From positions 1,856,416-1,920,415 of the forward strand of contig NC_134032.1 of assembly GCF_964204645.1 (NCBI RefSeq): DNA of 64,000 nt, written 5' to 3'. The notes under the pieces are model-generated. The model did no database searches. It was not told where the DNA came from and worked only from the letters and a program-made list of their open reading frames with translations. Position numbers and translations under genes: made by a program. The stretch is from Tubulanus polymorphus (lineage: Eukaryota > Animalia > Nemertea). Of this stretch, positions 14,030-38,150 are shown one piece after another. The number at the start of each line of letters is the position of its first letter. Position 1 is the first letter of the stretch.

Positions 14030-14485
14030 ACGGGGAACTAACGACCAACTGTGGCAATCGAGGATTCCGCGTATGGCAGTCGAGTATCCGCCAGGTGTCG
14101 CTAGTAGGTAGTTGGTCGTCCGCGTTCGATTTCTAATACATTTCAATTGACTTTTCTCTTAAATGAATCAATTATTCATGAAAACCGAACCGATATCCGA
14201 GTAGAAGAATGAAAGTATTATGTATTTAGTTGATGCTGTGATAATGCATGGTTTGGGGATTCTAAAAGTCAATCCAGTTCAAAGTTCATTGAAAAGTAAC
14301 TAATTTTGACGATTACGATTACGATTACGATTACGATTACGATAACGATTTATTTACACTCCAACCATTTCCATGGTATATGGAGGAAAACTATTACACA
14401 TGTATATACAAATATTTACAAAACAACACTGGATGCTCGTCACGCCATCTGGTGGGGTAGCTGCCGATGTTGCGGTTCCTCATTG
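14030..14485 (+). mobile_element. MITE family A copy carrying a LINE 3'-tail insertion
   Basis: Family A left arm 14049-14310, then insert 14311-14420, then right arm TGCTCGTCACGCCATCTGGTGGGGTAGCTG. Confidence 0.8.
14311..14420 (-). mobile_element. LINE 3' terminal fragment with (GTAATC)n tail
   Basis: Similar to the 3' UTR end of the longer LINE fragment at 37539-38100. Stem-loop CTCCA-ACCAT-TTCC-ATGGT-ATA-TGGAG; on the minus strand AATAAA is followed by a microsatellite tail. Confidence 0.7.
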
Positions 14486-15283
14486 GGGAACCCGCAGACG
14501 CGCACTCGAGTGGTTAAAGCAGTTCGTAAAACGGCATCGCAATCTGATCGGGCATATACACCGCTGAGCTAACATTTTCAGTAAATGCCACCTGTATTCT
14601 CGGCGGGAACTCGCGTTCGAATTTACGACAGTTGCAGCGAAGCGCGCAGTGACGCGGCTATAACTAACGCGCAGCCATAGCGTCCAATAAACCACCGCAA
14701 AATCGTTAACGGGTCTCACCGAGAACGTAAAACCCACGACATAGAACGCGTTTCGCTTGGCTTCACTCGCAAAAAACGGCATTATCGAAGATTTAACACC
14801 TCGGAGGCCGTTATTCGCGAATCCTATATATACTGCCTCGTATATTCATCGACCGTGTCTTCAGAATACCCGCATTAAAAAAACTAGGCCCGTTCCAGAT
14901 AACGTTAGTTTGAAATGATACTAGGTTCCAGTTGGAGACCTAATAGACTAAGCATTTTTACATAGCAAATCATGCAGAATCCTAAGTTTCAGATAAGCAA
15001 AAAGCGGAAGTGTGATTGTTGAACTGATGGATTGTGCAAAAGGGTTGTAGCTTATAGATTTAAGAACGATCAACCAATATCGATAGAAAATGACTCGTTG
15101 GGCTTTAAAGTGTGGCCAATTTTACCAAAATACATTCAAAATGATGCACTTTTCGGGAAGATGGGTCCGATTTGTAAGCATCGACGATTATAATTACGTT
15201 CATTCGAAATATGAATGCCTATAGACATTCGGCCGTAAGTGACAACCGAAATGACAACCGCAATGAGACGACACGGAGCCCAG

Positions 15284-15390
15284 GGTCCAGTTCCACAGTT
15301 CCGAGTTAAGATTTAACTCTGAGTTAACTCATCGAAAATGAACCAACTTTAACTCAGAGTTAACTCTAACTCACAACCGTGGAACTGGAT
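15284..15390 (+). mobile_element. MITE family B
   Basis: Same TIR and body as the copy at 4926. Confidence 0.85.
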
Positions 15391-16835
15391 CCGGGAAGCC
15401 CTCTCTACAACCCGCCTGCGCCACGATTTAGTAATATATGAATACAAATGCTCAGATGGATAAAGGTTTTCCGATGTTTAGAAGGATCTGAACGGCACGA
15501 TCCGCTGGGTTTCCTGAGAATAGCGAAGGACCGTTCGAATTCCCGGGCGAAAGAGTATAGCTGTATAAGGTGGTTCGTTTTCATCGTGAAAAGGTCTAAT
15601 CACCGAGAAGACAAATCAAATTCCGCAGGACGCGAACCCGAACTTAATTGCGATTTGCCTCGAATATGCAAATGAGATCTCTGAGTGGCGCATTGAGAGA
15701 GCTCTACTCATTAACATGGGCTCCTGCCTGTCGCTAGAGACAGGAGTTGAATAGATGAGCGGGTGGAGGTGGGTGGAGATAGGGGAATAGTGAAAGGGGG
15801 GACACTGATTAAGACAAAACAAGACGTTGAGTGGAATGGTAAGAGAGAGGAGGGTAGTAGGACAGGGGGAGAGGATTGACGAGGTTGGCCTGGTAGAGTA
15901 TATAGGCGGTGCATGGTAGGATGGCGGTTTAGGGGAGGGAGTGCCAAAGGATTGTATACGGGGTCGGTTTAAAGAGATTGTTAATGGGATACGGGCGCCA
16001 CTAGATGGCGCACGACACAAAACAATGGGTTATTTTTAGTGAAAAAATATTCACCTTCTCAATCAATATTGGTATAGATTCCAATGAAATAATCTTCATT
16101 TACTAACCAGAAATGTTGACTCGAATCTAACCGAAATGTCGAAGAAACTGAAGCGCTGTAACCCAGTGTTACTAGCGACACCTGGCGGATTATCGCCGAA
16201 TCCTCGCTTCCCTCAGTAGCCGTTGCGGTATCCCATTACATCGGCTGGGAATCGATCTAAAGTCGTCAACTGTTGCAGATCGAACTCGCGTGTCGATCAA
16301 TGCGCGCAAACCACTAGTTAGAAATACGAGGAGATTTGGAGACAGAATTAGGACAAATACTTTTGAATGTCACATCGAAGGAGGTCTGTATAGACGGCTC
16401 TTAGTTCTCGTCTAGTTAGCGAGCAGCGTCCATTTCTATGCAAATTCGCGTGATGAAATCGCCGCGTTGTGAACAGCGCGCAGACACGTGATCGGAAATC
16501 TAAGATCAGATTGTTTCATCGCCGAGGGCAGCAGGTAACTCGACTGTGACGTCAGTTGTACGAGCGACAATGACGTCACGATAACGTTACCAGGCCTACG
16601 AACGCGACGATTTTATAGCATTCCCATCGACAGAGCAGCGTTAGGATAATTGAGATGCCAAGGAAGGTCGGGTCTAAAACGAAAGAAAGATGAAGTTCCC
16701 GGTGAGACACAGCCATGCAGTATCTGAATACAATGAGCGCGGGCAGCCCGGGGAGTATTGTGCAAAGAAAAGAACATGTTTCTTTTTCTACGAAAATATG
16801 AATATCGAATTTGCGGTTATTGAAAGGTCGCAGTC

Positions 16836-35650: not shown

Positions 35651-35790
35651 GGTCCAGTTGCATAGTCCTGGCTCAGACTTAAGACCAATTTAAGACCATC
35701 TTAGTTCTATAACCCATCTAACAACTTAAGACCAGTCTTTAAATTAAATACCATTTTTGGACTTAAGTCTCAATATTGAGGAACCAGCCC
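35651..35790. mobile_element. MITE family C
   Basis: Reverse-oriented homologue of 12994-13131. Confidence 0.8.
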
Positions 35791-37274
35791 CAGCTGGACA
35801 ATTTTCATTCGGGCCTTTATGAATCCTAACAAACCAATTTACTAAAAATATCGCGAAATTTATACATCATGGACTTGTAAATATCCCATATAGAATATGC
35901 TTTAGATATTGTTTGATATCATTTCTTTCTTTCTTTCATATTTTCATATTTTATTGTTCACCAATTTTTGTTTCCCCGCATTCAAGATTTATGACGAATG
36001 AATTAATTTGAATTTGATTTTATCAAACCTTCTGCCCGACGCGCACGACGCATGGAAACAAGGAAACATGTTTCCGAGTGTTTCCTCGTGACGTGCGCGT
36101 TGGGCTTTACAACCGGAAATGAGGTCATTATTTCACCACAGCGTGGAGTCGTATTTTCGTTACCGGAATACCAAGGTCGTCGCGTCAGTTCATGGATGTC
36201 GATATCTGTCCAGCGACGATGGCCGATCATAGATACGACCGAATCGCTAGCACATAAGAAATATGCAGACACCTCCCAAATCAGGAAAATGCTTCACAAA
36301 GAGTCTAAACCTCTGCCTTTTGTATAAAGGTCGCCCTTTAAGTGTCTTCACCGGGAACCTTAGTGTTTTTAGTAGTCGGTTACACTAGGATCGTAGAGCG
36401 ACGGAGGTCACTGTGGAGACAACCACTACCAGGCCTTGGTAAAGGAAATGCATGTGCAAGAATCAATTTCATTTCTAATTTTTGTTTAGACTCATAAGAT
36501 TAAAACCTCCCACATTGTCGTGGCTTACGAAAGAGACGTAATGAGAAACAAATCGAGAACTTTTTACACAATTTTCTTGATTTCAATTATGATTAAAAAT
36601 ATTCACCTTCTTGCGCGGCGGATACATTCGCTATCCCCGGGGGATGACGTCACCGATTGTAAAAATCAGATCCGCATCGATTCTAAGTCGGTACAACCGG
36701 GATAATTCCCTTTTCATATCAGACATAAAGATTTTATGATTCAATTATTGCTTTGATCGGAAGCTGTGCTGAACGAACGCGCAGCCGCCGTGTTTATGTT
36801 GCCTATGGTATTCCAATAAAGACGGACGACTTTTGAAATTACGTTATCTTATAACGACTATTCGACGCGGCCGCGGTCGCCGTTGCAAAGTAACGAGCGT
36901 CAGGAATGCGCCGTTTGAAATTCAAATTGGATCTTCTGCGCTTCTGAGATTGTACGCGACGATGAATCGAAAACATTCTTAGTTTTACTGCGCCACGCCG
37001 CTTAGAAAACGTCTCTCGCTCCGATCTCCGAGCAGCTTGACTTTCAAGCCTCGGCCTTTCGGGGATTCTTCCGCATCTCGATTTAGGATCCGATGGATTA
37101 GCTTTGCGCCAAATCTATTATTTATGAAATCTACATTTGAACCGAACATCGAGTGGAAAGGGGGAGAAGATATCGAAATGGATTGAAAACGAAAATTGAA
37201 AAAAAAAACTATTCTCACGGTGAATAACTGGGATTGCTGGTATCCGGGCAGGGATTCGAATCGGGCACCGGCAC

Positions 37275-38150
37275 CGCTACTGTGGCAATCGAGGATCCAC
37301 CAGGTGTCGCTAGTAGATAACTCGGTCTTTTGCGCGTTCAATGTGTTATACATCTCAATTAAAACTCAATGAACTTTTTCCCTTAAATGAATCAATTATT
37401 GATGAAAACTATTCCGATATCTGAGTAGAAGAATTAAAGTATTGTATATGTGGTGAGTCCTGCGATAATATACGGATTCGGGAGTCTAAAAATTCTGTTC
37501 GAAGTTCATTGAAATTGAACTAATGCTAATAACGCACAAGGATTAGGATTAGGATTAGGATTAGGATTTTATTTAAACTCCAACCGTTTCTATGGTACAT
37601 GGAGGGAGACTTATACAAAGTATACAATATTTACAATTAACAGAAAGTTTAATATATATAGTTTAATAAATATATATATATATATATATATATATATATA
37701 TATATATATATATATATATATATATATATATATATATATATATATATATATATATATATATATATATATATATATATATATATATATATATATATATATA
37801 TATATATATATATATATATATATATATATATATATATATATATATATATATATATATATATATATATACACTATTTATATACATCTAAGCCTTTTTCAAT
37901 GAATTTTGCAAGGTGGATTGTAGGAATTTTTTAGAATATCAAGATTGCCAAAAGAGTTCAGGTTCAAAATATTTTCACGGATTTCATTCAGTAGGTTGCA
38001 GTTAACAATAAAATGTAATTCATCGCCTAAAACATTACAAGCCGAACGTAATCTATCTGTTCTATCTAACGGAAGATTTGATAATTTATTTACAGGCAAG
38101 AGACCGAATGCTCGTAACGCCATCTGGTGAGATAGCTGGTTTGCGGATTG
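37275..38150 (+). mobile_element. MITE family A copy interrupted by a LINE fragment
   Basis: Left arm 37275-37537, and right arm AGACCGAATGCTCGTAACGCCATCTGGTGAGATAGCTGG at 38101-38140. Confidence 0.85.
37539..38100 (-). mobile_element. 5'-truncated non-LTR retrotransposon (RTEX-like ORF2 C-terminus, 3' UTR, (AATCCT)n tail)
   Basis: Minus-strand peptide LPVNKLSNLPLDRTDRLRSACNVLGDELHFIVNCNLLNEIR matches a degenerate LINE C-terminal zinc knuckle (C-x2-C...GDExHF-x3-C...R). Stop at 37896, 3' UTR with an expanded (TA)n at 37669-37868, then stem-loop, AATAAA and repeat tail. The clade assignment is tentative. Confidence 0.8.

Follow-up and report, generated by a model that had tools for sequence, protein, structure and literature searches.

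A LINE of the nemertean Tubulanus polymorphus probably selects its integration sites by a short CTCF-like motif and not by the MITE that carries it

Target-specific long interspersed nuclear elements (LINEs) are known for ribosomal DNA (rDNA), telomeres, small RNA genes, microsatellites and the tRNA genes of Dictyostelium. The element described here is a LINE of the nemertean Tubulanus polymorphus, 3′ ends of which lie in three copies of a miniature inverted-repeat transposable element (MITE), termed family A, within a 64-kb stretch of contig NC_134032.1 (positions 1,856,416 to 1,920,415, forward strand); this whole stretch is called the window, and window coordinates count from its first nucleotide. 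As with Tx1L, which inhabits the DNA transposon Tx1D of Xenopus, and with Keno, Mutsu, Kibi and Koshi, a LINE of apparent apurinic/apyrimidinic endonuclease (APE) type occupies one spot in one orientation inside a transposon. Unlike in Tx1L, the target is carried by other sequences besides the transposon, most copies lie outside the transposon, and the conserved element is a motif of 8–10 bp situated ~18 bp from the nick, while the nick-site sequence is not conserved. TRE5-A and TRE3 of Dictyostelium, which contact TFIIIB/TFIIIC and thereby insert at fixed distances from tRNA genes, share with the present element position and orientation specificity, a short and slightly variable distance and the lack of a conserved nick. 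Position-specific LINEs of this TRE type appear to be the best match for the way in which the element works, although the landmark here is a CTCF-like motif and not an RNA polymerase III gene, the distance is ~15–25 bp as opposed to ~48 or 100 bp, the host is a metazoan, and contact between the element and a protein on the landmark is putative.

The rDNA and telomere LINEs R1, R2, TRAS1 and SART1 likewise show a strong sequence-defined target preference and fixed orientation, but they cut at a defined nucleotide in the recognized sequence and near all of their copies lie in the target, whereas here the spacing is loose and roughly 50–70% of copies adjoin the motif. A 3′ hairpin, a short tandem-repeat tail that varies between subfamilies, heavy 5′ truncation and short or absent target-site duplications are shared with the stringent-type L2/CR1-like LINEs (eel UnaL2, zebrafish ZfL2), from which the element differs in having an L1-type fold in its first open reading frame (ORF1); LINEs of the UnaL2/ZfL2 type are not known to be site-specific. 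CTCF sites borne by transposable elements have been described for the mouse short interspersed nuclear element (SINE) B2 (PMC9067402). Like family A, B2 is a small high-copy transposon that spreads CTCF-like motifs; in the present case a second element integrates beside those motifs, which is not described for B2 or CTCF, and no report of a LINE integrating beside a CTCF-type motif was found in the literature. The element can be described as a LINE with a target preference whose landmark belongs to a new class. We consider it likely (probability roughly 0.78) that it picks its integration sites by a short motif with the core GCGCCAYCT and not by the MITE, and that family A was hit repeatedly and independently owing to the perfect copy of the motif, CGCCATCTGGTGG, in its right arm. 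The observations that carry this reading are the association with the motif, its orientation and spacing, the independence of the insertion events and the far lower use of the left MITE arm.

Family A is an imperfect palindrome of ~310 bp with 12-nt terminal inverted repeats and nested inverted repeats in both arms; being short, non-coding and bounded by terminal inverted repeats, it is classed as a MITE. A 27-mer from the LINE 3′ end has exactly three sites in the window, at 14359, 20976 and 37578 (0, 1 and 3 mismatches, respectively; expected 0), and a BLAST search with the full-length LINE matched the window only at 14337–14430 (98.9% identity), 20953–21041 (89.9%) and 37555–38099 (72–74%). 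Both searches bore out the first-pass annotation of the window, which had noticed three family A copies containing antisense 3′ ends of one LINE family with distinct tails. Each of the three LINE pieces is 5′-truncated, antisense to its host and placed between the TTCATTGAAA...TTGAC block and the motif CGCCATCTGGTG of the host MITE. The first host extends over 14031–14486 (plus strand), its boundaries being approximate and derived from comparison with empty copies. The hexamer tail of its insertion (14311–14349, minus strand) begins right after ...TTGAC of the MITE and is the same as on 30 other copies; at 14350–14431 (minus strand) it is joined by the last ~80 nt of the 3′ untranslated region, including the CTCCA...TGGAG hairpin, and CGCCATCTGGTG starts ~11–12 bp from the 5′ junction, at 14443–14454 (plus strand). 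Fragment 2 (20952–21037, minus strand) has its 5′ junction 18 bp from CGCCATCTGGTG at 21056–21067 (plus strand); its truncation depth is close to that of fragment 1, but it lies in another MITE subfamily and at another junction. Fragment 3 (37539–38099, minus strand) comprises the 3′-terminal ~440 nt of an element from an older subfamily, aligns with LINE positions 4778–5220 and also ends 18 bp from CGCCATCTGGTG, at 38118–38129 (plus strand). Overall, the three pieces are spaced 11–18 bp ahead of CGCCATCTGG. Their tails read (GATTAC)n, (ATACGA)n and (AGGATT)n on the plus strand, or (GTAATC)n, (GTATTC)n and (CTAATC)n in LINE sense, the second and third each being one substitution away from the first. 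Fragment 3 is interrupted at ~37660–37868 by an expanded (AT)n microsatellite of ~200 bp.

Empty hot spots were present at all four places where they had been listed (~4440, 25280, 39340 and 40300): at 4419–4477 (plus strand), where the left block is followed after ~33 bp by the motif, at 25239–25304 (minus strand), at 39300–39345 (minus strand; degenerate motif CGCCATCTCG) and at 40272–40336 (plus strand). In the genome, 145 strict empty family A copies were counted. The filling of three of the six sites in this window is unusual (P = 1.3e-4 per window), yet such a window is expected by chance among ~4200 windows. Sequencing reads aligned to 13400–15400 in search of an empty allele of the youngest insertion were swamped by paralogous MITE and LINE reads, and joints such as 14310>14434 were indistinguishable from empty paralogues.

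Genome-wide, the left MITE block followed by a gap of 30–90 nt and the tail word was found at 12 sites (control, 0), and the antisense tail word followed by a gap of 30–130 nt and YGCCATCTGG at 20 sites (control, 0), seven of which overlap the first set; the union of both sets comprises at least 25 hosted insertions (12 + 13). With 1338 YGCCATCTGGTG sites in the genome, 0.144 antisense tail–motif pairs were expected by chance (P(≥20) = 5.5e-36), and the sense-orientation equivalent occurred once, giving an antisense to sense bias of 20:1 (p = 2e-5). A widened pattern matched 14 family A intervals, six of them with the LINE, and yielded an extra hosted insertion with a variant tail word; ~4 of the remaining matches rely on a copy of the block word further upstream. 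The 3′ junctions fall +0 to +21 past the TTGAC/TTCAC block (mostly +6 to +10) and the 5′ junctions 11–23 bp ahead of CGCC (mostly 14–23 bp), with one at 34 bp that is accompanied by a 17-bp target-site duplication; target-site duplications are mostly 0–6 bp. LINE lengths in family A hosts range from ~20 to 560 nt. At least three tail types are represented among the hosted insertions, with further types elsewhere, and at least two host subfamilies, which differ in sequence at the nick. The host MITE copies are old and diverged from each other, yet the young LINE pieces within them are nearly identical, the LINE being far younger than the divergence of its hosts.

It could be supposed that one ancestral LINE insertion in family A was spread by MITE transposition or segmental duplication, and some LINE copies have been duplicated together with their flanks (L001/L003, L004/L009 for the left flank only, with different 5′ flanks, L022–L024 and L051/L052). 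The varied junctions, truncations, tails and host subfamilies, and the young LINEs in old MITEs, exclude the spread of a single chimera by MITE transposition. Among the hosted insertions only L051 and L052 are mutual duplicates; a single spread insertion, refuted for all pairs but one, is to be rated as extremely improbable. The independent events that the first-pass annotation had deduced from the window were thereby upheld, the chimeras neither sharing one junction nor stemming from one chimera that had spread. One family A-like hot spot (L054, G000:C5:18497842-18500958) contains a stack of two LINE tails from different subfamilies, which indicates successive insertions at the same site. A head-to-tail pair of LINE copies was seen at L079.

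The tail word, with ≤3 mismatches, occurs at 572 sites in the 268-Mb assembly (control, 0). Family A-like copies hold at least 25 of these, at most ~4–5%, and at least 95% lie elsewhere. Thirty copies identical to the youngest insert of the window over 76 nt were fetched with their flanks, and by eye the 3′-side flanks of 30/30 looked unrelated to family A; one of the thirty, L025, was later found to abut the right arm of family A at its 5′ junction. The impression that no copy of the tail exists outside family A is thus correct inside the window and wrong for the genome. The claim that the LINE targets family A had to be given up as well: in the genome-wide count of tails most copies have unrelated flanks, the outcome that the first-pass annotation had itself set against its claim. 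The LINE is not confined to one host transposon family, nor is it strictly site-specific, with near all copies in one target and one cut nucleotide. An endonuclease specific for the sequence of family A, which would make this a true transposon-targeting LINE like Tx1L in Tx1D, would agree with three of three window tails and at least 25 genome-wide lying at one spot of family A-like copies. But the great majority of tails lie elsewhere, generic copies have only the motif core in common with family A, the nick sequence differs between host subfamilies, and the left arm, with the same local sequence, is rarely used; such an endonuclease, already largely refuted by the unrelated flanks and the shared motif core of the generic copies, is very improbable. 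A stretch of ~15 nt (about CTAGACGTATCGGCCC) abuts the hexamer tail in L010, L011 and L027, whose flanks are otherwise unrelated; it may mark a second hot spot, or have arisen by 3′ transduction or as a variant of the tail.

Outside family A, four arbitrarily extended copies showed GCGCC or CACGCC 13–20 bp past the LINE 5′ junction. For quantification, the 5′ junctions of 28 independent copies were set blind to the flanks (13 truncated copies from the first 30 loci, three extended copies and 12 independent loci found with the 5′-terminal 120 nt of the LINE). CGCCAYCT (≤1 mismatch) was present on the same strand +5 to +50 past the 5′ junction in 14/28 copies, at 13–38 bp, compared with 2/28 on the opposite strand and 0/28 in each of three shifted windows (pooled 2/112; p = 6e-10). 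Looser forms of the motif (TGCCCCCT, CGCCACTG, CGCCGCT) occurred in several more copies, the motif share of generic copies being half at ≤1 mismatch and about two thirds with looser matches. Only L025 and L083 of the 28 abut the right arm of family A; in L007, the left flank includes a family A copy at a distance of ~180 bp from the tail. When the two family A hosts were removed and 5-mers in the remaining 26 copies were compared with 156 control windows, CGCCA ranked top (10/26 versus 0/156), followed by GCCAC, CCACC, GCGCC, AGCGC and CACCT, which combine to AGCGCCACCT. The sequence between the motif and the 5′ junction is not conserved, that at the nick varies, and the 3′-junction sequences of generic motif-adjacent sites are unrelated. 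Fixed orientation (20:1) and a narrow distance to the motif (13–38 bp outside family A) are found here as in position-specific LINEs, and the integration bias is roughly 140-fold toward a window that lies ~15–25 bp off the motif on its CGCC side. The suggestion that insertion is guided at a CTCF-like motif comes near to these data, in which the same core, distance and orientation recur outside family A, with chromatin or bound CTCF as putative agents. Palindromic MITE context was not found around generic sites, in a weak test in which the positive control was only partly recovered. Two more repeat families carry the motif core (GGTAGCGCCGC in L047 with L072/L074, and GTCACGCCACCT in L045 with L078) and have received at least two LINE insertions each at slightly different offsets; family A is thus not the sole hot spot in repeated use.

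The left arm of family A mirrors the local sequence of the right arm, but the motif there is CGACACCTGG. This variant has 1680 sites in the genome, of which three have an adjacent antisense tail, as opposed to 20/1338 for the right arm, i.e. ~8-fold less use (p = 5e-5). Since the left-arm variant is rarely used despite the same local sequence, it is the motif, and not the adjoining MITE sequence, that counts. Random or weakly biased insertion would require that the pattern arose from selective retention, or from pairing of the hexamer tail (the ACGATT repeat) with a target sequence resembling the tail (ACGAATAAC or ACGGAAG). Microhomology of 1–4 nt between target and tail exists at many 3′ junctions and would be compatible with such pairing, but the 3′-junction sequence is unrelated at generic motif-adjacent sites, subfamilies with different tails share the same spot, and the 140-fold excess, the 20:1 orientation and copies that are 99–100% identical leave little time for selection. 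Retention or tail pairing was therefore considered improbable.

Recovery of the full-length element, which had been recommended in the first-pass annotation, was achieved: the LINE is ~5.27 kb long, genome copies align over about 5.2 kb, and it carries ORF1 and an ORF2 with reverse transcriptase. The 265-aa product of ORF1 contains a coiled coil and has the fold of an L1-type ORF1p (Atlas; template modelling (TM) score 0.71–0.73). The reverse transcriptase of ORF2 was identified with PF00078 RVT_1 (E = 1.5e-36, 126 bits versus a cut-off of 29.6 bits) and has 2264 homologues at E ≤ 1e-10. The endonuclease region reached 24.6 bits with PF14529, under the cut-off of 27.4 bits, and a PDB sequence search with the N-terminal endonuclease piece of ORF2 gave no match; the region can be aligned to PF03372-annotated homologues, the D, N, H, E and S-D-H columns being invariant, a weak but alignable similarity that suggests an endonuclease of the apurinic type. 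In the homologues the endonuclease begins at the N-terminus. No DNA-binding domain was recognized in Pfam scans of ORF1 and ORF2, in the PDB search of the ORF2 endonuclease piece or in an Atlas search of ORF1, by which its absence is not proven. The 3′ end has a CTCCA...TGGAG hairpin ahead of the hexamer tail; compared with shuffled sequence, the 3′ 110 nt had no extra fold stability (z = −0.13), so that from one sequence the hairpin is without statistical support. About 11 copies reach the full-length 5′ end, compared with 572 tails, and most copies belong to a 5′-truncation series sharing one 3′ end, from ~20 nt to 3.1 kb. The element is a recently active non-LTR (long terminal repeat) retrotransposon with subfamily-specific hexamer tails. 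In a near-intact copy (L044, G000:C6:15067900-15076900), ORF1 (sense nt 416–1210) and ORF2 (1214–2926) are in one frame, separated by a single TAG, and ~105 in-frame codons precede the point at which the endonuclease starts in homologues. Directly past the 5′ end of a full-length copy, L043 contains a 955-aa ORF with NACHT and leucine-rich repeats (5404–8271, G000:C6, minus strand).

With respect to mechanism, first-strand nicking and priming take place on the strand that reads CGCCAYCT, ~15–25 bp 5′ of the motif. The 5′ end of the LINE consequently always faces the motif, and the element, read in LINE sense, lies downstream of AGRTGGCG. GCGCCAYCT is the reverse complement of AGRTGGCGC, which we take to be the conserved CTCF core of flies and vertebrates. 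In view of the unconserved nick sequence, the loose spacing and the lack of any recognized DNA-binding domain in the element, we favour tethering of the LINE particle, in the manner of TRE elements, to a host protein on the motif (CTCF or a CTCF-like factor), an explanation to which we would give slightly less than even odds. A more tentative proposal is that the recruiting agent is CTCF, or something retained by CTCF at the motif, for example on the GGCG side. The N-terminus of CTCF, on the GGCG side, faces cohesin. The origin of CTCF is reported to lie in the bilaterian ancestor (PMC10658181).

Alternatively, and as the chief competing explanation, the proteins of the LINE itself might read the motif without any host factor, either by ORF2 outside the endonuclease or by the endonuclease at a distance (cf. 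R1, TRAS, SART, Tx1L). The known metazoan site-specific APE-type LINEs all choose the target by their own protein, and recognition is sequence-sensitive, the right-arm motif being used ~8 times more than the left-arm variant. On the other hand, Pfam shows no DNA-binding domain in ORF1 or ORF2, the endonuclease is N-terminal in the homologues, ORF1 resembles the RNA-binding ORF1p of L1 type, the nick-site sequence is not conserved at spacings of 13 to 38 bp, and the match to the CTCF core would be a coincidence; motif reading by the element's own proteins is therefore rather unlikely.

Several findings weigh against selection of sites by a motif bound by CTCF or a similar factor. No recognizable motif adjoins roughly one third to one half of the generic copies, so that the targeting is a preference and not absolute, and the spacing between motif and junction is loose (13–38 bp). 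No tether domain or DNA-binding domain was identified in the LINE, and the motif is presumed to be a CTCF site from the likeness of CCACCAGATGGCG to the published CTCF core and logos. Both junctions were inspected in ~55/572 copies. Finally, of ten LINE relatives in other assemblies (40–58% amino-acid identity), the two nearest, L086 and L087, adjoin CTCF-like motifs, but in the remaining eight no such motif was seen or the 5′ end could not be placed. The pentamer tail of L086 is expanded to >500 bp.

Further features were noted in the window and in the assembly. At 21330–21400, a short way downstream of the second family A copy, a GCC-repeat stretch adjoins a long (CT)n/(CTCTCC)n microsatellite. 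On the minus strand at 57742–58313, the word AAAGTTCATTGTTA recurs every 93 bp and marks a 93-bp tandem array. Stretches resembling a tRNA T-arm (GGATTCGAATC, GGTTCGAATCCC) are situated just outside a left MITE end (37240–37262) and in the left flank of L013/L046 beside one LINE tail; by their sequence, they might be heads of tRNA-derived SINEs. Identical empty family A hot-spot sequences occur in runs at G000:C3:0.41-1.24 Mb (16–53 kb apart) and G000:C6:0.66-1.74 Mb (~30–35 kb apart), which points to large tandem or segmental repeat arrays.

The insertions in family A illustrate that 'transposon-in-transposon' hot spots can stem from a motif carried by the host transposon. If confirmed, the preference would provide a natural system for the steering of an APE-type LINE by a landmark about two helical turns from the nick, and would tie transposon spread to chromatin-organising sites of bilaterians in a phylum whose genome architecture is almost unstudied. 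If recruitment by CTCF is true, the element would be the first retrotransposon known to use an animal architectural protein as an integration tether; MITE-borne CTCF sites would then be repeatedly split from their carrier, and two mobile elements would jointly remodel insulator-like sites.

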